Below are positions 2,881-35,004 of a DNA stretch of 64,000 nt, in pieces. How positions within the stretch are numbered: the stretch's first letter is position 1; every line of letters starts with the position of its first letter. The notes under the pieces were generated by a model. It ran no database searches, was not told the DNA's origin, and saw only the letters and a list, made by a program, of their open reading frames with translations. The translations under genes were made by a program, and so were the position numbers. The stretch covers positions 124,001 through 188,000 of the IMG/VR virus record IMGVR_UViG_3300032242_002041; one strand, given 5' to 3'.

Positions 2881-4589
2881 CCTACGTATTGATCGTAGTG
2901 TATTCCTTGCCCTACAAGCCCTACAGTTTGTGCCACATTTTCTGGGCTTTCGCTGAACCCAATCAATACATCAGCACGGCTAACACCATGATTAACACTA
3001 TTAACCCAGAAATCAAACCCATCTTTTTCCGGAGCACGGTGCAACACATTGTGATAAAGTGCCGTGACAAAAGTTGATGTTGACCCATCTCCGTAAAAAT
3101 TATTATGGAATTCTATGCTCTCTATAAATCCTCCGGCAACATTGTGCAGTGACACGCCATGATCCAAGGCATTGATCCAGTAGCCTAGCCCAGCGGTATC
3201 TGGCGCACGGCCCAATGCAGCAGTATATAGTCGATAAACTTCGCCAGTTGGTTGTCCTGCACTAGAATCAAATGCAACCACGGTGTCAGAAAATTCAAGA
3301 CGTTGAATATTAGTTAATGTATCGGATCCATTAAAGGTAGATGATACTGTTATACCATCGGTATTCTTAGTGATAGTAGCAGTTGATGATGGGCCATAAA
3401 ACACCGCAGTATTAATCACACCATTCTTACCAACAAAGACATCATTGTGTGGAGTACTAAAATAATAATTGGGCAAAGGATCTTGTGTAAATGCCTGGCG
3501 TAGTGCAGATTCGGCTGAAGTGTTCCCCCATAGGTTCCATCCAAGAATAGATGATTGATGCCAATATTCAGCAAAAGTGTTATTTGGTTTTTGTATCCAT
3601 GATGTTTGTTCCCACGGCATATACCCGTCTATGCCAACACCAGTATTTCCATCACCTAATAGGTGTTGAGCAACATATACATAAGCCCGAAGTGCCAAGG
3701 CCTGTTCACAATAATTGGGTGCTGGTAAACTTGTTAAACCCGATAAGTTTCCCGAATATAGTAAATCTGGAATTACTATGTTATTACCAATTCCGGGATT
3801 GGCAGTTTGTACATGAAAACCGTCAAGTATTAATGAATTACCATATTTTTGAATTAAATTTTGAATAGTCTCAATTACGTTACCATCATCTAAGGTGTGG
3901 TAATAGCCTTCTACAATCTGGGACAAGTTATACATTGGTACTGTAGAGATTAACGGATCAATAAAGTAATTTGCTGAATTTGTCAAAGACCAAACGGCAT
4001 TGTCCCACATAGCTTGATAGGCTATTTGCCCTGTGTAAACTGAATGAACAGAATCAATTAAATTTTGCCAAAGACCCAGGTAAGAAGTTGTATCCAATCC
4101 ATACATGTTTGATCCAACATAAATTCCTTCTATATTATGTTGTTGGGCTATTTTTGCAATGGCCAGGTCATATGGAATGATAGTATTATTAAATATTTTA
4201 TCAAATGTTACGCCGGCTCCAAGTGAAACGGTTGAAGTCAGATTTGGATCAGCACCATTTCTTGATCCATCCGCATTAAAAGCACCGCAAGGCAATATTT
4301 GAATTTTTACAGATAGTCCAATTGAATGAGCATAATCTACGACCTTCCAGGTGTCAGCAATCATTGACAAGTCTGAGCCACCGGGCTTGCCAAAATTAAC
4401 ACGGCCCGTGCTCAAATCAATTGGGATTTCAAGTGCAAGTGTAATTGTGTTAAACCCAACACTTTTTATGTGATTTAATTGTGGAGCCATTTCTGCAATT
4501 GAATTTATTGCATAACCATTAAGATCATATTCTCCTGGGCTACTAAATCGATAATCAATTAGGACATTTTTTTCTGGCATAATATTCAT
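2877..4589 (-). CDS. Glycoside-hydrolase-like TIM barrel (GH113/GTA-like) fused to C-terminal DUF4214 domain
   Basis: VGFNTITL, IEGIYVGSNM and YTGQIAYQAMWD resemble GH113/GTA barrel; DTLTNIQRLEFSD; RLYTAALGRAPDTAGLGYW and LYHNVLHRAPEKDGFDFW are DUF4214-like. Confidence 0.65.
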   Translation of the reverse strand: MNIMPEKNVLIDYRFSSPGEYDLNGYAINSIAEMAPQLNHIKSVGFNTITLALEIPIDLSTGRVNFGKPGGSDLSMIADTWKVVDYAHSIGLSVKIQILPCGAFNADGSRNGADPNLTSTVSLGAGVTFDKIFNNTIIPYDLAIAKIAQQHNIEGIYVGSNMYGLDTTSYLGLWQNLIDSVHSVYTGQIAYQAMWDNAVWSLTNSANYFIDPLISTVPMYNLSQIVEGYYHTLDDGNVIETIQNLIQKYGNSLILDGFHVQTANPGIGNNIVIPDLLYSGNLSGLTSLPAPNYCEQALALRAYVYVAQHLLGDGNTGVGIDGYMPWEQTSWIQKPNNTFAEYWHQSSILGWNLWGNTSAESALRQAFTQDPLPNYYFSTPHNDVFVGKNGVINTAVFYGPSSTATITKNTDGITVSSTFNGSDTLTNIQRLEFSDTVVAFDSSAGQPTGEVYRLYTAALGRAPDTAGLGYWINALDHGVSLHNVAGGFIESIEFHNNFYGDGSTSTFVTALYHNVLHRAPEKDGFDFWVNSVNHGVSRADVLIGFSESPENVAQTVGLVGQGIHYDQYVG

Positions 4590-4944: not shown

Positions 4945-5149
4945 CAGGTAGTCCTTTTACTGTATCTATGGCCTTGCGAGCATATTGTTTAATATTATCT
5001 TCCCTACTCATACGTTCAATATCTTCTAAGGCAGTCATCATAATTTCTGCTTCCTCGGCTTGTTTATAAACCTTGTTACGCAGATTGCCAGCATCTAACC
5101 ACGACATAACTGTGGTTAGTACTTTGGCAATGATCATGCTCCATATCAT
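4928..5149 (-). CDS. Hypothetical protein
   Basis: ORF track; coupled overlaps. Confidence 0.7.
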   Translation of the reverse strand: MIWSMIIAKVLTTVMSWLDAGNLRNKVYKQAEEAEIMMTALEDIERMSREDNIKQYARKAIDTVKGLPVEDNR

Positions 5150-5836: not shown

Positions 5837-6117
5837 CAGCGACCAAACTTTAATAAAAAGATTGTGTACTTTTTTTCGTCAATGATAGCATAATCAATAT
5901 TGACACCACCTGTGTAGCTGTCTATTGTGAGTTTGATGCCATAGTATTCACGCACATAATCGTCAAAGGTAAGGAATCCTTGGCCAACAGGTACTGCCTC
6001 CGCCAGCAGATCCCATTCCTGTTTAGCTTCGTGTAAACGGGCAAAATTACGAGTATCACCACCAATAATAGTATCCAAGCGGGCCGCTGTATTGGCGTAA
6101 TATTCGTCCTTACTCAC
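5836..6117 (-). CDS. Small paralog-family protein
   Basis: Ends YAIIDEKKYTIFLLKFGR. Confidence 0.75.
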   Translation of the reverse strand: MSKDEYYANTAARLDTIIGGDTRNFARLHEAKQEWDLLAEAVPVGQGFLTFDDYVREYYGIKLTIDSYTGGVNIDYAIIDEKKYTIFLLKFGR

Positions 6118-11542: not shown

Positions 11543-11618
11543 TGGTGCCCCCACCATGATTCGAACACGGGACAACCGGTTTACAAAACCGGTGCTCTAC
11601 CAGCTGAGCTATAGGGGC
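11543..11618 (-). tRNA. tRNA-Thr(TGT)
   Basis: Cloverleaf GCCCCTA...TGGGGGC-ACCA; anticodon loop TT-TGT-AA; GTTCGAATC T-loop. Confidence 0.95.
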
Positions 11619-11626
11619 ATACTACT

Positions 11627-11842
11627 TCATTCCGTTACTGTTTCTACTACTGGTGCACGATAACTAGGACGACTTTTCATCACAGCGATCCTGCGTTGAA
11701 TTTTTGGTGCGGTCTTTTTACGGGCCGTGGCCAATAACTTTTCTAACTGTGCTACATTTAATGGACCCAAGCGTTCTCGACCATTTTTGGTACGCATTGG
11801 ATCTGCCCGACGACTTTTTTGATTTCCACCTTTGGCTGCCAT
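11627..11842 (-). CDS. Small basic hypothetical protein
   Basis: ORF track; SD AAGGA. Confidence 0.7.
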   Translation of the reverse strand: MAAKGGNQKSRRADPMRTKNGRERLGPLNVAQLEKLLATARKKTAPKIQRRIAVMKSRPSYRAPVVETVTE

Positions 11843-11898
11843 GTTGTTTCCTTATGTTATCTTTTACTTATTTGTAGCAATACATAAGATTAAAATTC

Positions 11899-11991
11899 TG
11901 GAGGAGGGCTAGGGATTCGAACCCTAGATGGACTGTTAAGGCCCATGTCCGCTTAGTAGGCGGATGCCTTCGACCGCTCGGCCAGCCCTCC
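11899..11991 (-). tRNA. tRNA-Ser(ACT), long variable arm
   Basis: Stem TCCGC/GCGGA with loop CT-ACT-AA; long variable arm; encoded CCA; U73. Confidence 0.85.
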
Positions 11992-23090: not shown

Positions 23091-23167
23091 TGGTGCCCCT
23101 GGTAGGATTCGGACCTACAGATCCCGCCCTCTTAAAGCGGTGACTTTACCAGTTTGTCTACAGGGGT
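23091..23167 (-). tRNA. tRNA-Leu(AAG)-like, atypical (short variable loop, A1:C72 mismatch, TCCGAAT T-loop)
   Basis: Stem CCGCT/GGCGG with loop TT-AAG-AG; encoded CCA. Confidence 0.6.
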
Positions 23168-23171
23168 ATGA

Positions 23172-23203
23172 TGGATATAAGAGGCAGATTTGAACTGACA
23201 ATT
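23172..23203 (-). pseudogene. 3' tRNA remnant (T-arm + CCA)
   Basis: GTCAG-TTCAAAT-CTGCC-TCTTATA-T-CCA; 5' half replaced by the CDS ending at 23204. Confidence 0.45.
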
Positions 23204-24298
23204 TTACAAATTATGTATGCGGTGGTGTAACCAATTTCGCAGAGGGCCAATAAAGTGCTCACGATTTTGAATCCACCAATGATTGTGATCTAACACATTT
23301 TTTAATTTTCTGTAAACAATAAAAGAATCTTTTCTGGCCAGATCAAGCATGGATTGCCAGGCCGCTTGCCATCGTTCACCATCATCGGTTATTTGATCAT
23401 ACGATTCATCTATTATAGAATCAAATGTTTGAAACCCTAGTTGATTTAGGTTGTAAAGGAAATTAGCTGAGCCGAATACTATAAATGGTCTTTTGGCAAA
23501 TAACGGCTTGGCTGTTTTTTCTGTAGGAAAAAAATGATCGTTATTAAAATATGGGGTTCTTGCGGTAGTTTCGGCTACAACACTATAATTCGAGTCGGCA
23601 TAAATTTTCCATGGCACACGGTTTGATTCTCTTTGTTGAAAGGGTACTCCATGACTTCCAGTTATATAACTATGAAAAGAAAGTCCACCGTTGAGTTTTT
23701 CACATACTTGATCTGTTTCGTATTTTTCAAGTCCAGGAGTACGATAAATTGTTTTGCAATTAATATCAGCATTGTTGGAGGTGTAGTTTACAAAACTTTT
23801 TGTTAACAAAGAAGATTGTTTTAGTTGATTAAACAAATAATCTCTATGAGGTTTTTTCAAGCCCAGCAATATATCAAATATATTTTCTTTTGATGTAGAG
23901 TAATTTTGATCTTCAAATTTGTTAAAAGGTGTGCCTACTTCTAACAACATCCAGGGAACCATGAAATAATTTTGATTGTTTATTTTGTCTCCGGTTACTA
24001 AAAGTATATTAGAATTAATATAATATTTTGCAAGTCTATCTTCATAATCGGGCCAAGGAATCCATTCTTTACTAAACACAATAACTAAATCAAACAAAGA
24101 CAAATCAAGTGCTAGTTGTGTAAAAGACTGGCATTGAACTACTGCTATTTTTTTACCGCAATTAAATCGAAATCGAGTATAATTACTGTAGTAATACTTG
24201 CTGTCGATTGGCAGGATATCGTAATGAGGAAATAATTCTCCTGGGCGAATTTCAAACGATTCTAAACAGTGGTCAATATTATATATTTGATTAAACAT
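23204..24298 (-). CDS. Putative glycosyltransferase (TEK motif family), paralog 3
   Basis: VVAETT...FPTEKTAKPL...PFIVFG...GFQTFDSIIDESYD; TAAATA at 24309-24314. Confidence 0.5.
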   Translation of the reverse strand: MFNQIYNIDHCLESFEIRPGELFPHYDILPIDSKYYYSNYTRFRFNCGKKIAVVQCQSFTQLALDLSLFDLVIVFSKEWIPWPDYEDRLAKYYINSNILLVTGDKINNQNYFMVPWMLLEVGTPFNKFEDQNYSTSKENIFDILLGLKKPHRDYLFNQLKQSSLLTKSFVNYTSNNADINCKTIYRTPGLEKYETDQVCEKLNGGLSFHSYITGSHGVPFQQRESNRVPWKIYADSNYSVVAETTARTPYFNNDHFFPTEKTAKPLFAKRPFIVFGSANFLYNLNQLGFQTFDSIIDESYDQITDDGERWQAAWQSMLDLARKDSFIVYRKLKNVLDHNHWWIQNREHFIGPLRNWLHHRIHNL

Positions 24299-24323
24299 AG
24301 CAGAAACATATTTAATATAGAGT

Positions 24324-24401
24324 TGGAGCAACGGGTAGGATTTGAACCTACGGTGTTAGGGATTTGCAGTCTCTCGCATTGGGCCACTCTGCCACCGTTG
24401 C
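24324..24401 (-). tRNA. tRNA-Cys(GCA)
   Basis: Cloverleaf, loop CT-GCA-AA, U73-CCA. Confidence 0.95.
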
Positions 24402-24407
24402 ATTGTT

Positions 24408-24482
24408 TGGCTCCCCTCGACAGATTCGAACTGCCACGATCGGTTTTGGAGACCGACATGCTACCGTTAACATCAAAGGGGA
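24408..24482 (-). tRNA. tRNA-Trp(CCA)
   Basis: Cloverleaf, loop CT-CCA-AA. Confidence 0.95.
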
Positions 24483-24487
24483 ATACT

Positions 24488-24561
24488 TGGAGCGGGATAA
24501 GAGAATCGAACTCTTGACCGAAGATTGGAAATCTGCTGTTTTACCATTAAACTAATCCCGC
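24488..24561 (-). tRNA. tRNA-Gly(TCC)
   Basis: Cloverleaf, loop TT-TCC-AA. Confidence 0.95.
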
Positions 24562-24580
24562 TTAGGATTTTACTACAATT

Positions 24581-24656
24581 TGGCTCCGGTCCCTGGAATC
24601 GAACCAGGCTTCATGGATTAACAGTCCACCGCCTACACCGTGTTTGCTTGACCGGA
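24581..24656 (-). tRNA. tRNA-Asn(GTT)
   Basis: Cloverleaf, loop CT-GTT-AA. Confidence 0.95.
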
Positions 24657-24662
24657 TTTGTC

Positions 24663-24864
24663 TAGTGTTAAAATTACTATTCTATGTTTAAGAGACTCTG
24701 GCCTGTGCTGGTTAACCCAGTCATTGCGCGGATCTCTCCTTGTTGCGTCGTTTACACAGCATCAGCAGGCTGTGGTTTCCTGGATTACAGGCTGACTTGA
24801 CAAGGATGGTTATCTTCCTTAACAGTTAGGATTGCTTACTCTTTCGCACACAATCTTAACACTA
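24663..24864 (-). ncRNA. Unassigned ~200-nt structured RNA inside the tRNA array
   Basis: 13-bp terminal stem TAGTGTTAAGATT/AATTTTAACACTA; internal GCCTGT/ACAGGC, CACAGC/GCTGTG, CTGG/CCAG, TCCT/AGGA. Confidence 0.55.
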
Positions 24865-24870
24865 AACAAC

Positions 24871-24946
24871 TGGCGCTCCCAGCGAGATTCGAACTCGCGT
24901 ACTCACCGTGAAAGGGTGATGTCCTAGGCCTCTAGACGATGGGAGC
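24871..24946 (-). tRNA. tRNA-Glu(TTC)
   Basis: Cloverleaf, loop CT-TTC-AC. Confidence 0.95.
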
Positions 24947-24963
24947 ATCTAAACAATAATTCT

Positions 24964-24992
24964 ATTATACAACTACAAATTACATTTGTCAA
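24964..24992 (-). promoter_or_regulatory. Sigma70-type promoter of tRNA array
   Basis: TTGACA-17-TATAAT. Confidence 0.9.
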
Positions 24993-25036
24993 CTAGATAA
25001 AAATTTTTATAGTCGATTAAGCCAATAAATAAATTT

Positions 25037-25807
25037 ATGTCCACATATAACATAGAAGTACATGATAATTTAATAGCTCCAGATTTGCATGAAAAAATTT
25101 ATCAATATATAAAAACACTTACCTTTACAGGAGTTTGGTTGGAAGCCAAACGAGTTGAATTTGATTATAGTCTCAACAGTCCCAAAAATCCAGCCGACTG
25201 GATGTTGTATCAAAGTATGGGCAGAGAACTACAATTACATCGGTGCCCGTTAGCCAGCGACGAGCACAGTTTAAAGGCCTTTCCGCCAATTTATTTGTTA
25301 TGGAAAGAGATAAATCGTCGACTAGACAATCAATTTGAGTTAGCTGGGAATCCAGAAGGCATGGCTACTCCGTTAAAAATTCCAACTCCGCAAGATTCTA
25401 ATTTAAAAACAGGATGGCGTGCCTATATAAATGCCCACTATAATACACACGCAGGACACGGCGGCGACGGTTATGCACATCGAGATACACCGTTAGAATA
25501 TAATGATGAAAACACTGTTACTATGCTGTATATTGCTAATCCAGATTGGTATCCATCATGGTCGGGCGATTTAAAATTCTACGGCGAAGATCCCGAAGGA
25601 CTATCCAAAGATCATCAACAGTTTAATCGTGGTATACAGCAACGACGAAATTACAATGTTGGGTGGTTAGATCAAGGACGTGTAGTAAGTCCAGTTCCCG
25701 GACGTTTGATTGTATATGATGGACGTTGTCTACACGGAACTACTTTACCAAGTTCTCCTCTTGAAACACCAATTATTAAAATAGCATTTCGTGCTAGACG
25801 AAAATAA
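25037..25807 (+). CDS. 2OG-Fe(II) oxygenase (prolyl-hydroxylase-like)
   Basis: AHRD, WSGDL, LHG, KIAFR; TAAATA at 25026-25031. Confidence 0.8.
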   Translation: MSTYNIEVHDNLIAPDLHEKIYQYIKTLTFTGVWLEAKRVEFDYSLNSPKNPADWMLYQSMGRELQLHRCPLASDEHSLKAFPPIYLLWKEINRRLDNQFELAGNPEGMATPLKIPTPQDSNLKTGWRAYINAHYNTHAGHGGDGYAHRDTPLEYNDENTVTMLYIANPDWYPSWSGDLKFYGEDPEGLSKDHQQFNRGIQQRRNYNVGWLDQGRVVSPVPGRLIVYDGRCLHGTTLPSSPLETPIIKIAFRARRK

Positions 25808-25809
25808 TT

Positions 25810-25894
25810 TGGTGGGCCAGGAAAGATTCGAACTTTCGTACTCAGAGAGGGGAGATTTACAGTCTCCTGGTTTTAGCCACTCACCCACCGACCC
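25810..25894 (-). tRNA. tRNA-Tyr(GTA)
   Basis: Cloverleaf with variable arm, loop CT-GTA-AA. Confidence 0.95.
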
Positions 25895-31289: not shown

Positions 31290-31645
31290 CTATTTTCTGT
31301 TACGAGGTATAATTACCCTAAGCAGTGATTAAACTGCTAAAGATTGACGTTGTGCTGTACGAGCAGAGAACTTAACGTTCTTACCTGAAACAGTTACTTC
31401 GCCTGTATTTGCGTTTGCATTTACGAGATTTGCTTCTTCGACCGAGCTTCCCCAGTCCTAACGGCTTTAGCTTTGCCGATTCTCCAATAGCCCTTGTGTG
31501 CCAATCGATACCAAATTCATCCCCACCGAAGCATACTGTTTTCACCCTCCGAACTTCACGCTGGGTAACGCATCACAATACACTTCGGTGGAGATGTCGG
31601 GGCTTGAACCCGAGTCTTGCTCACCCTACTTCTATCTTCAACGAA
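31290..31645 (-). ncRNA. ssrA: Circularly permuted (two-piece) tmRNA
   Basis: Acceptor piece GACTCGGGTTCAAGCCCCGACATCTCCA (to 31589) precedes 5' piece GGGGATG (31524); intervening self-complementary stem; tag ORF 31418-31329 ANANTGEVTVSGKNVKFSARTAQRQSLAV; outer ends approximate. Confidence 0.85.
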
Positions 31646-31777
31646 TTTTATTTTGTGGCATACTTTTTTAAGTCGACCACTACTAAACCCTTTATGTTGG
31701 ACAAGAGTTCGACCAACTTTTACTCTAAGACACAGTTTGCCTTCACTACGAAGGAATTACAACAATTCTTTTAAAAC

Positions 31778-32625: not shown

Positions 32626-33564
32626 TTAACTACGTTTGATTTGATCAACTAATCCAGGAGTGAAATAGTCTTGATACTTGTCATATACCACCTGTGTTGC
32701 CTGAGCAAAACGAGCTTGCTCTTGGGTTGACATTTTAACAACTTCAATGCCATCCGCTATGCAACGGTCTTGCACCAATTTGATATCAGCAACACTTAAA
32801 TCACGCTCGTGACTGGCAGCAACTCGAGCAGCATCGGCTACAACTGTTTGCAATTCTGGGCTTAATGTATTCCAAAAATCTGTGCCAACCAAAATACTAG
32901 TTAAAAACAAACTGTGCTCTGTGTGGTTTACAACCTTGGATACTCGATCTTGACCTAGGGCATAAACACGTGGGTAGGTACTTTCACCAACAGTAACATC
33001 GGCTTGTTCTAAACCTGTGGCTAACTCTTCTAACTCCATTGGCACTACATCGGCGCCAACTGCTTTAAATGTGTCAATAGCAACAGGGCTATGACTTGTG
33101 CGAATTTTCAAACCGCGCAGATCTTCAATCTTGGCAACTGTTTCGTTTCCTGGAATAATGCGGAAGCCGCCTGAGTATGTAAATGCCAGACCTTTAACCT
33201 TCTTGGACTCTTGAAGACTGTCCAATAACTGTTGGCCCACTGCTCCTTCAAATACACGACTAGCATGATCGTGATCAGTGAACAAGAATGGTAAGTCTAA
33301 TGCAAAAAAGTCTTTGTTTACTTTGCCCAGGGTAATGGTGTAGGTTTGACTCATTTCAATTTTACCAGCATCCAATAAATCTAACAATTCGTGTTTGGTC
33401 ACTACGACATTGTTGTTATATTTTTTTGAGTATTCGCCCATGGTCATAACTTCGATATCTAATTGGCCTGGCGCACGAGCATTTACTTCTGCGGCAAATA
33501 CCTTAGCTGCGCGAATGAATAGTTCAATTGGTTCGTGGGCCAATACCCATTTAATATGTTTCAT
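32626..33564 (-). CDS. TRAP transporter substrate-binding protein (DctP-like), no signal peptide
   Basis: ALDLPFLF, GFR, DLRGLKIR, VVPM, TEHS. Confidence 0.85.
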   Translation of the reverse strand: MKHIKWVLAHEPIELFIRAAKVFAAEVNARAPGQLDIEVMTMGEYSKKYNNNVVVTKHELLDLLDAGKIEMSQTYTITLGKVNKDFFALDLPFLFTDHDHASRVFEGAVGQQLLDSLQESKKVKGLAFTYSGGFRIIPGNETVAKIEDLRGLKIRTSHSPVAIDTFKAVGADVVPMELEELATGLEQADVTVGESTYPRVYALGQDRVSKVVNHTEHSLFLTSILVGTDFWNTLSPELQTVVADAARVAASHERDLSVADIKLVQDRCIADGIEVVKMSTQEQARFAQATQVVYDKYQDYFTPGLVDQIKRS

Positions 33565-33700
33565 GTAATCTCCGTTTGATTTTAGAGCTTGCGAAAGATT
33601 TCGCTTACGGGCGGCGTTCCACGTGTAACACAGTGGTAAAAGGGTCGTACCCTAGGCGTCTGCTGAATCCGACGTCAACTGGCTGTTGGCGTTGCTAGTT
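33565..33700 (-). promoter_or_regulatory. Structured 5' leader (candidate riboswitch) of the dctP-like gene
   Basis: Starts just after TATAAATA (33702-33709); hairpins CAAC/GTTG, AGGGT/ACCCT, CCAC/GTGG, GCGAAA/TTTCGC; GC-rich relative to the genome. Confidence 0.45.
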
Positions 33701-33709
33701 TTATTTATA

Positions 33710-34894
33710 TTAAAATTTTGAAAAGTTATTAATTCCGGTATCTTGATAATCTGCAGGTCCTAGGCAATAAAACGGGCTTAAAAATCCTACAAATCCTACA
33801 GGGTTACCTAATTCATGATTAAAAAACTTGTCATCAATATTATCGACTAGTAATTTAAGTCCGGCCTGCCAGGCTCGATATGCGTCAGTTTCTTTAAAAT
33901 TGGTGTAAAACCAAAAATCCATTTCATTATAAAAACTATTGGTAGGTTTGGCTGTTTGAAATGTGGCCGGATCATAGTCGGGATAGATCAACGGTTTAAC
34001 CATCTGTTCGTAGGCTGTCCTATGAGCAATACTATGGTTGGGCCAACGTACTAGATACTGTAAAAATTTATTCTGCGGCAACATAAACCAATTTTTAATA
34101 ATATGGGCTTGTTTATGCACGATCTCCGGCAGGTCAGGAGTCCAGTAAAAATACTCGTTGGTAATGTTATCGTAATCGCCCATGACCGAATTACTATGGT
34201 TGGCCTGTAGATCCATAAAATACACATACCATTTACCATCTCGAATGCACATTTTGGGTTTATCTATTCCGTACAATACACAGATACGCTTGCCACGGTC
34301 AGCATCACGGCGGTGATCAATATAGCCTACATTGTCGTGTTTGAAAGCATGCCCGGGTTGGAAATAATCCTTGCTTTTAAACACCCAGGTTTCGTCTAGC
34401 TCGCCTTTTAACATGTTTTCTGAATAGTCGTGCATGGTAACTTTTACAGCAGGATGATTAACAGTGATCCAGTTCAACAAGGGCTTTGCAGCAAATTCCC
34501 ATTCGCTTAGTGTGTTTTCGCACTTGGTGTTGTAGGGATCATTGTGTACATTCTTTTCACCGGTTTTAGGATAACGGAATACTACTTCGTCAAGATGTAT
34601 GCCATTGTTAAGAAAACTATAGATAGCTGTGGTACTGTCCCCACCGCCCGATGCTTCTACACGTATCCAGTCGTACTGTTCTCTAAGTTGTTGGGCCCGC
34701 AGGCGATACAATTCTTTAATTGATAACTGCGGTTCAATTTCCCAATTAATTTTATCAAACACATCACGATTAAATTGCCACTCAGGAAAATGCCTGGTCT
34801 TGGTAGACTCAATTAACGCTTCTACTTTACCATAGAATGTTTTGTCACCTACGTGATAGTAACCTAATTTGCGATTGTTTTCTAATTTAAACAT
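33710..34894 (-). CDS. PP-loop enzyme, paralog C
   Basis: VEASGGGDS, LYGIDKP, EYFYWTPDLPEIVHKQ. Confidence 0.75.
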   Translation of the reverse strand: MFKLENNRKLGYYHVGDKTFYGKVEALIESTKTRHFPEWQFNRDVFDKINWEIEPQLSIKELYRLRAQQLREQYDWIRVEASGGGDSTTAIYSFLNNGIHLDEVVFRYPKTGEKNVHNDPYNTKCENTLSEWEFAAKPLLNWITVNHPAVKVTMHDYSENMLKGELDETWVFKSKDYFQPGHAFKHDNVGYIDHRRDADRGKRICVLYGIDKPKMCIRDGKWYVYFMDLQANHSNSVMGDYDNITNEYFYWTPDLPEIVHKQAHIIKNWFMLPQNKFLQYLVRWPNHSIAHRTAYEQMVKPLIYPDYDPATFQTAKPTNSFYNEMDFWFYTNFKETDAYRAWQAGLKLLVDNIDDKFFNHELGNPVGFVGFLSPFYCLGPADYQDTGINNFSKF

Positions 34895-34929: not shown

Positions 34930-35004
34930 TGGTGGGCCTTGCTGGGAACGATCCAGCGACCAAGGTCTTATGAGGACCCTGCTCTACCACTGAGCTAAAG
35001 GCCC
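34930..35004 (-). tRNA. tRNA-Ile2(CAT) (lysidine type), atypical T-loop ATCGTTC
   Basis: Loop CT-CAT-AA; body resembles enterobacterial ileX (TTGGTCGCTGG...CCAGCA..GCC-ACCA). Confidence 0.8.

Follow-up and report, generated by a model that had tools for sequence, protein, structure and literature searches.

The region analyzed lies in a 64,000-nucleotide stretch (the window) of the virus record IMGVR_UViG_3300032242_002041, a 228-kb record that is estimated to be 66% complete and that contains a T4-type Gp23 capsid gene, together with ten tRNAs and a permuted tmRNA within the window. All genes at this locus are on the minus strand, and no alternative genetic code was needed to read them. An open reading frame of 394 amino acids ends with TAA (33710-33712) and is followed at once by the box TATAAATA, after which 137 nt separate the box from the ATG (33562-33564) of a gene for a DctP-family protein. 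A preliminary description, made from the sequence alone, had noted a GC-rich leader with multiple hairpins in this interval and had regarded it as a candidate new riboswitch. The features considered below are as follows.

33710-34894 (minus strand): upstream gene, a 394-aa phage-specific protein with a PP-loop-like SGGGDS motif
33702-33709 (minus strand): inferred T4-type late-promoter box TATAAATA
33587-33695 (minus strand): core of the conserved RNA motif (about 109 nt), from the G of GCAACGCC to the C of AAGC
33694-33695 (minus strand): proposed 5' strand (G,C) of helix P0, pairing with G,C at 33587-33588
33672-33692 (minus strand): P1 hairpin, ACG-C-CAAC / GUUG-A-CGU, with a conserved C.A mismatch
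33669-33671 (minus strand): tentative PX 5' strand CGG, proposed to pair with CCG at 33608-33610 and to enclose P2 and P3
33655-33660 (minus strand): invariant joining strand GACGCC (consensus GACGCY)
33641-33653 (minus strand): P2 hairpin, AGGGU-ACG-ACCCU
33636-33640 (minus strand): near-invariant joining strand UUUAC
33619-33635 (minus strand): P3 hairpin, CACUG...CA(C)GUG
33605-33618 (minus strand): invariant AACGCC, two variable nucleotides, then CCGUA(A)
33591-33604 (minus strand): P4 hairpin, GCGAA-AUCU-UUCGC
33584-33590 (minus strand): AAGC, the conserved 3' end of the motif, running into CUCU, a candidate anti-Shine-Dalgarno sequence
33570-33573 (minus strand): Shine-Dalgarno sequence GGAG, 5 nt before the ATG
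32626-33564 (minus strand): DctP-family TRAP solute-binding protein, 312 aa, without a signal peptide; the gene proposed to be regulated

The motif starts 5-6 nt after the promoter box and ends about 22 nt before the DctP start codon. The observation in the preliminary description was confirmed, since every string that it listed is present on the minus strand: CAAC-AGCCA-GTTG is the distal part of P1, AGGGT-ACG-ACCCT is P2, CCAC...GTGG is P3 and GCGAAA-TC-TTTCGC is P4. The region is locally GC-rich (0.53-0.56, against roughly 0.30-0.50 in the flanking 100-nt windows). The downstream protein was assigned by Pfam PF03480 (E 3.4e-54) and by NCBIfam TRAP_S1. Its best solved relative is 4P47, and its N-terminus aligns near the start of solved SiaP chains. 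The upstream 394-aa protein gave no Pfam, PHROG or NCBIfam hit and no solved relative by sequence; its atlas neighbours are all viral, and one related cluster carries QueC.

Conservation and covariation of the leader RNA

Taken alone, the leader does not fold better than chance. The minimum free energy (MFE) of the 158-nt leader is -27.7, against a mean of -28.6 for shuffled sequences (z +0.27), and z was -0.81 on the other strand, so that single-sequence folding was not informative. To this end, homologous leaders were collected. DctP homologues in IMG/VR gave 52 loci, three of which (here numbered L001, L045 and L047) share the upstream gene and a recognisably homologous leader in which the hairpins differ by paired substitutions. 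A DNA pattern built from the conserved single-stranded blocks found 22 viral stretches, and relatives of the upstream open reading frame added copies that no pattern had selected. A covariance model, R1, was then built; it scores the window copy at 126.5 bits (E 1e-30) and finds only this copy in the 228-kb record. R1 confirmed 39 of 120 metagenome pattern hits and at least 80 further copies from a relaxed pattern on viral contigs; in all there are 121 distinct motif sequences in viral and lake-metagenome contigs. However, none of the first 120 pattern hits in bacterial genomes, which come mostly from GC-rich genomes and look like chance matches, passed the model, and nothing was found in four further genomes or in 151 Burkholderiales genomes; as the bacterial scan was saturated and the sample comprised 155 genomes, this means not found in bacteria rather than proven absent. 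A blastn search of a phage GenBank collection found only the neighbouring tRNA-Met.

Comparison of these sequences is decisive. A MAFFT alignment of 24 distinct copies, which was not fitted to any structure, gave an RNAalifold consensus in which 18 of 26 pairs show compensatory changes. In a 64-sequence alignment, which was fitted to the model but tells the same story, 97.3% of cells form standard pairs, against 28-49% when the 3' partners are slid by 1-3 columns; 21 of 27 pairs have changes on both sides, and 0 of 500 shuffles reach the observed values. The 80 further hits replicate the core. Helices P1-P4 are thus secure. Five of the seven pairs of P1 have compensatory changes, and its basal A:U is replaced by G:C in 14 sequences. 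All five pairs of P2 (98.4% of cells paired), of P3 (97.4% of cells paired) and of P4 have compensatory changes, including the closing G:C of P4, which becomes A:U or U:A in three sequences. The consensus structure is compatible with the window sequence at -20.9 kcal/mol, and the MFE structure of the 121-nt piece recovers P0-P4.

Two further helices are less certain. P0 was proposed by RNAalifold, but both of its pairs are essentially invariant (with one G-U), and covariation therefore neither supports nor refutes them. PX was preferred to RNAalifold's alternative ACG:CGU hairpin inside AACGCC..CCGU because the only informative variant (L064:5000-5122, the same as L420:8261-8383) carries C->G together with G->C, which keeps PX and breaks the hairpin. 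However, this is a single event, and PX remains tentative. A pairing of UUUAC with GUAAG is possible on paper, but it has no covariation and clashes with PX and with the closing pair of P4.

About 45 positions in the joining strands are invariant, namely GCA, GACGY-CGGA, GACGCY, UUUAC, AACGCC, CCGU and AGC. In the 63 full-length homologues, the GACG of GACGCY is invariant, the following C is present in 62 and the sixth base is C or U; UUU is invariant, followed by A in 61 of 63 and C in 58 of 63. AACGCC and CCGU are invariant apart from one truncated copy and the single C40G/G117C variant. Three of the conserved blocks were fixed by the search patterns, and their invariance is partly due to how the copies were found; however, GACGC, UUUAC, CCGU and AGC were not in the final patterns and are just as constant. 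The segments GACGCY and UUUAC were not part of any search pattern, and CCGU was not required by the pattern used for the metagenome and second viral scans.

Four of the five pairings in the preliminary description (P1-P4) are therefore kept by compensatory substitutions, first across 64 and then across 80 homologues. The fifth, CGTC/GACG around GGATTCAGCA, is complementary in the window but was rejected: in 15 of the 63 full-length homologues the U of GACGUCGGA is C, which would break that helix, and the change instead covaries with A7->G in P1 (AU 47, GC 14). The suggested resemblance of the ACG-loop hairpin to guanidine-II (mini-ykkC) was also rejected. That riboswitch is defined by two hairpins, each capped by a conserved ACGR tetraloop, whereas only P2 of this window, a GC-rich stem, has an ACG loop; in the homologues the P2 loop varies in sequence and in length (about 3-10 nt), no other hairpin has ACGR, there is no Rfam hit and the gene context is unrelated to guanidine export.

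No Rfam 15 family (4227 covariance models) matches the motif. There was no hit over the leader at gathering thresholds, the only hit at E<=10 on 33400-33900 was a chance snoRNA match at E 4.7, and there was no hit over the motif in 14 other copies at E<=5. In addition, literature searches found no prior description within the open-access papers covered.

Promoter position, downstream genes and possible Shine-Dalgarno pairing

In 60 of 63 homologues a TAAATA box ends 4-8 nt before the first conserved G of the motif, with 56 of these at 5-7 nt, and nothing further upstream is conserved. The boxes are TATAAATA in 14 cases, GATAAATA in 13, ACTAAATA in 12, AATAAATA in 10, CATAAATA in 9 and GCTAAATA in 4. 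In the phage's own genome, nTAAATA words are the most enriched 7-mers upstream of open reading frames apart from Shine-Dalgarno words, at 8-11 fold, although exact TATAAATA is not enriched in the 64-kb window itself (5 found, 6.5 expected). Together with the Gp23 capsid gene, this supports a T4-type late promoter, which has a -10 box without a -35 box, placed a few nt upstream of the start site. A search for PF02916 (gp45 clamp) found nothing, but its controls were also blank and the result is uninformative. By the geometry of T4 late promoters, the inferred start site falls at or next to the first base of the motif, at or 1 nt before the conserved GCA, and the fold would therefore carry the 5' end of the transcript in nearly all copies. 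A search for sequencing runs at this locus returned only DNA runs, probably from the source study. The claim that most other late genes have leaders under 10 nt is right in spirit only: in the 228-kb record, nTAAATA boxes mostly sit 15-32 nt before start codons, which gives leaders of roughly 10-26 nt if transcription starts about 6 nt after the box, but the contrast is real.

Of the 121 distinct copies, 111 are followed on the same strand by an open reading frame, usually 10-40 nt after the end of the model. Clustering and Pfam searches on representatives gave DctP in 36 copies, TctC-like proteins in 22, DUF2061 membrane proteins in 9, TauD-family oxygenases in 8, TctA in 7, PP-loop-like proteins of the family of the 394-aa protein in 7, porins in 5, an unnamed signal-peptide family in 4 and SBP_bac_8 in 3, with a methyltransferase, an Asp/Arg-hydroxylase-like and a Trp-halogenase-like protein once each. 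A further cluster of three is a hexapeptide transferase lying 141-165 nt away, which may not be directly controlled. About two thirds (66%) are solute-binding, transport or porin genes, and the motif thus lies in the 5' leaders of genes with a common metabolic theme. Near-complete phage records of 317-374 kb carry one or two copies, whereas one 345-kb record with a DctP gene has none. About ten copies, upstream of TctC-like or porin genes, have a good sigma-70-like promoter between the motif and the gene, with 50-110 nt between them; in those phages only the late transcript would carry the leader.

In many copies the bases directly after AGC can pair with the Shine-Dalgarno sequence, such as CUCU(AA) with (UU)GGAG in the group of the window, CCUU with AAGG in another, UUCUAA with UUAGGAG, and CACCAA with UUGGAG. 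The hairpin often includes the G or C of AGC, the proposed 3' strand of P0. Cognate pairs of AGC plus 8 nt and the Shine-Dalgarno region are more complementary than non-cognate pairs (means -2.77 and -2.11 kcal/mol; permutation p about 0.004), although relatedness of the sequences inflates this test. Furthermore, only 16 of 38 pairings in nearby genes (about 40%) are at or below -3.3 kcal/mol, and in the window the pairing is just 4 bp (-4.1 kcal/mol, against -6 to -7 in close relatives). This platform is suggestive rather than established. No terminator or U-run follows P4 in any copy inspected.

Possible function of the leader

The interpretation given in the preliminary description, a cis-regulatory RNA that perhaps senses the ligand of the PP-loop/DctP module, is partly supported. 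The element is a conserved structured RNA between a late-promoter box and the DctP gene and precedes a functionally coherent gene set, as riboswitches do, and the PP-loop-like family is itself the downstream gene in 7 of 111 cases. Beyond that description, the motif begins at about the inferred +1 of the late transcript, was found only in phage and lake-metagenome contigs and not in the bacterial genomes sampled, and precedes many gene families rather than DctP alone. A multi-helix junction with many invariant unpaired bases in the 5' leader of transport and metabolic genes, partly overlapping a potential Shine-Dalgarno-sequestering helix, is the usual signature of a riboswitch, and a ligand-sensing leader that gates late expression of solute-capture genes is considered the most likely mechanism, although it is only about as likely as not. 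The RNA structure, its conservation, its position at the promoter, its gene associations and its absence from Rfam are established by the present analysis, whereas the transcription start, PX and P0, the competition with the Shine-Dalgarno sequence and its direction (ON or OFF), ligand binding and the small-molecule nature of the effector are inferred.

In this view, P0 closes the junction, P1 and P4 branch from it, PX opens onto P2 and P3, and the invariant joining strands are proposed to form a pocket for a small ligand. The 3' strand of P0 runs into a pyrimidine stretch that can pair with the Shine-Dalgarno sequence 10-20 nt further on; formation of P0 on ligand binding would therefore compete with sequestration and set translation. 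However, the copies with 50-110 nt between motif and gene fit translational control poorly. A 5'-anchored design might also protect against 5'-end-dependent decay, which would cover these copies. The genes would be phage auxiliary genes for capturing organic anions (TRAP DctP, TTT TctC and TctA, porins) and associated enzymes (TauD-type 2-oxoglutarate oxygenases, PP-loop proteins and DUF2061). The DctP protein appears to keep both anion-binding arginines described for 4P47 (R152 and R173), while Asn213 appears to be Ser (PMC11668362); the R173 match, in GLKIRT, is secure, whereas the other two were read by eye from the alignment. TRAP and TTT systems carry organic anions and TauD-type enzymes consume 2-oxoglutarate, so that an organic anion (for example 2-oxoglutarate or another di- or tricarboxylate, a uronate or a sulfonate) is a reasonable first guess and a nucleotide alarmone a second, both being speculation. 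With one or two copies per genome and none found in cells, no cellular regulon points to a ligand, and a phage-encoded protein partner is equally conceivable.

A bolder and more tentative possibility is that this is the first riboswitch class confined to bacteriophages, with an aptamer built onto the 5' end of T4-type late transcripts that senses a host metabolite for which no riboswitch is known, such as 2-oxoglutarate or another organic anion, or an infection-state signal, whereby giant freshwater phages would decide late in infection whether to make their own solute-capture proteins. If the RNA binds a metabolite, it adds a new riboswitch class, possibly with a new ligand, and would show that phages carry their own metabolite-sensing control over auxiliary metabolic genes rather than borrowing host regulators. 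The motif also ties together poorly understood phage genes (signal-less DctP, TctC and TctA, DUF2061, TauD-like and PP-loop-like genes) as one regulon, which gives a handle on what these phages take up or sense. Even if the partner is a protein, or the role is protection of the 5' end, it is an unusually well supported new RNA family that, with 121 distinct copies and four covarying helices, is ready for biochemistry and for an Rfam entry.

The closest analogs in kind are the manA and wcaG motifs of T4-like cyanophages (Weinberg et al., 2010; PMC2864571), which are structured RNAs found almost only in phage and environmental sequence upstream of auxiliary metabolic genes, have no known ligand or partner and are thought to let phages tune host metabolism. 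However, their Rfam models gave no hit, and the resemblance is functional and ecological only; the habitat and probable host (freshwater, with a beta-proteobacterial-type tmRNA) and the gene set (TRAP and TTT binding proteins, porins and TauD) differ, and the present motif is anchored at the inferred +1 of a late promoter. Translational riboswitches with a Shine-Dalgarno-sequestering platform, such as SAM-II/V, preQ1 and the glutamine glnA RNA, likewise place a conserved junction in a 5' UTR, with a 3' end that overlaps or abuts a sequence complementary to the Shine-Dalgarno sequence, before transporters and enzymes with one metabolic theme. However, the motif is not homologous to any of them, its Shine-Dalgarno pairing is seen in only about 40% of copies, it was not found in cellular genomes and its ligand binding is only inferred.

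Among the alternatives, the leader could be the binding site of a phage-encoded or host protein, such as a translational repressor or activator or an RNA chaperone, which would coordinate late expression of the auxiliary transport genes; the RNA would then be an operator and not a metabolite sensor. This is unlikely but is the strongest rival. The restriction to phage and lake-metagenome contigs, the low copy number and the non-universal anti-Shine-Dalgarno feature are consistent with it, and T4-type phages use protein-RNA operators (RegA, gp32 and gp43). However, about 45 invariant junction nucleotides over a 109-nt fold of five or six helices is far more than known phage operators need, the many downstream families exclude autoregulation, and no co-occurring candidate RNA-binding gene was identified, albeit without a systematic search. 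Less likely still is a constitutive element that senses nothing, either a 5'-terminal stabilizer or translation enhancer that shields late auxiliary-gene mRNAs from 5'-end-dependent RNases, or a put-like RNA acting on RNA polymerase. The fixed spacing to the promoter, by which the 5' end would be buried in P0, and the copies far from start codons favor this view. However, a simple 5' hairpin would suffice for protection, the many invariant unpaired bases imply a specific tertiary structure or partner, and the element is restricted to one functional class of genes, whereas other late genes in this genome have short plain leaders. A self-cleaving ribozyme or a separately accumulating small RNA, with the downstream genes as bystanders, is similarly improbable. 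The element has its own promoter, a compact conserved fold, a phage association and a position in the tRNA/tmRNA region, and several copies are followed by a second, sigma-70-like promoter; however, no terminator or U-run follows P4 in any copy inspected, the same-strand genes that follow in 111 of 121 copies, mostly within about 10-40 nt, fall into a narrow set of functions, and no ribozyme family in Rfam matches. Finally, a mobile promoter cassette conserved at the DNA level, like the PeSL (promoter-early stem-loop) cassettes that shuffle genes in T4-type phages but carry early promoters and a simple stem-loop and act at the level of DNA recombination, would account for a promoter-plus-leader unit that recurs before many unrelated genes in the plastic tRNA/auxiliary-gene region and for one internally duplicated and truncated copy (L317 and L354), but it is largely excluded because the compensatory double substitutions in four helices, and the loop length variation with preserved stems, show selection on RNA pairing rather than on DNA identity.

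tRNA/tmRNA region and the genes flanking the leader RNA

The phage carries a permuted (two-piece) tmRNA gene together with ten tRNA genes, and the motif usually lies in this tRNA/tmRNA region. The features of the window that are considered here are the following.
31386-31646 (minus strand), also 11543-11991, 23091-25894 and 34930-35004: permuted tmRNA gene and ten tRNA genes
32626-33564 (minus strand): DctP gene
33710-34894 (minus strand): gene for the 394-aa protein with a PP-loop-like motif

In a related contig (L253, positions 496-899; L numbers designate the contigs that were compared), the tmRNA also scores against the beta-proteobacterial tmRNA model, although below its threshold, which hints at a beta-proteobacterial host.

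The phage DctP has no signal peptide; it begins MKHIKWVLAHEP and aligns near the start of solved SiaP chains. No DctQ or DctM gene was identified next to it, as the ORFs downstream are small and had no Pfam hit. A cytoplasmic orphan solute-binding protein is odd. Both anion-binding arginines appear to be kept and the Asn appears to be Ser. The 394-aa protein has an SGGGDS PP-loop-like motif and belongs to a phage-only family with no Pfam model. In addition, related contigs carry a second paralogue in tandem with SGGADS, just downstream of their copy of this gene (L055, L056 and L058), and an Atlas neighbour cluster carries QueC.

A link between DUF2061 and DctP was also suggested by gene order. 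In phages lacking the motif, the gene directly upstream of DctP ends with a DUF2061-like C-terminus, as read by eye from the sequence (L006, L009, L018, L019, L031, L032 and L052). In other phages DUF2061 genes are themselves preceded by the motif (L277, L223, L255, L308, L313 and L355), of which L277 and L355 were confirmed by Pfam. These arrangements suggest a functional link between DUF2061 and the DctP module.

Other leaders upstream of DctP genes

Other phages put a different conserved leader between a TAAATA box and their DctP gene (L005, L008, L009, L017, L019 and L032), about 30-80 nt upstream of position 3001 of the contig (position 2012 in L019). This leader is a hairpin with covarying stems (GYAGG/CCURC and variants) around the constant AGTCATGA, followed by the palindrome TTAACGTTAA. 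However, GTCATGAC and TTAACGTTAA are DNA palindromes, and these may therefore be operator sites rather than RNA elements.

Another DctP leader, at about 2880-2990 in L003 and L004, starts after GATAAATAAATT with AGCAATGTTAGCATGGCTAAC and ends with CTGCTAGCAAC, which recalls the 5' AGCAACG and 3' cnAGC of the motif. The covariance model of the motif (R1) was run on L003 and did not match this leader, and the leader of L004 is identical. It may be a distant or degenerate variant of the motif, or it may be unrelated.

Duplicated and rearranged copies of the motif

Some phages carry two copies of the motif about 1 kb apart, each in front of a different gene. The paired copies are the following.
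L064 (the same as L420): 5000-5122 and 5993-6109
L364: 4999-5120 and 6061-6177
L217: 1-63 and 1106-1226

In L064 the genes are that of an unknown 276-aa secreted protein and then DctP, and the upstream copy is the only sequence with the C->G / G->C double change that bears on the proposed helix PX. Furthermore, one copy (L317, positions 4083-4181 and the 100 nt downstream; the same as L354) is truncated after P3 and is followed at once by a second partial copy starting at GACGCC, indicating an internal duplication or rearrangement of the motif.

Promoters near the motif and across the phage record

Near-consensus sigma-70 promoters (TTGACA, about 17 nt, TATAAT) sit between the motif and TctC-like or porin genes in L076, L091/L428, L062, L274/L347, L239, L320 and L075. 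On this sequence evidence, these genes would be made early without the leader and late with it. In the whole 228-kb record, nTAAATA boxes lie 15-32 nt before the start codons of at least 25 ORFs. However, the upstream region of the capsid gene itself (L341, positions 2671-2700) lacks a clean box, and this gene may be co-transcribed with the gene before it.
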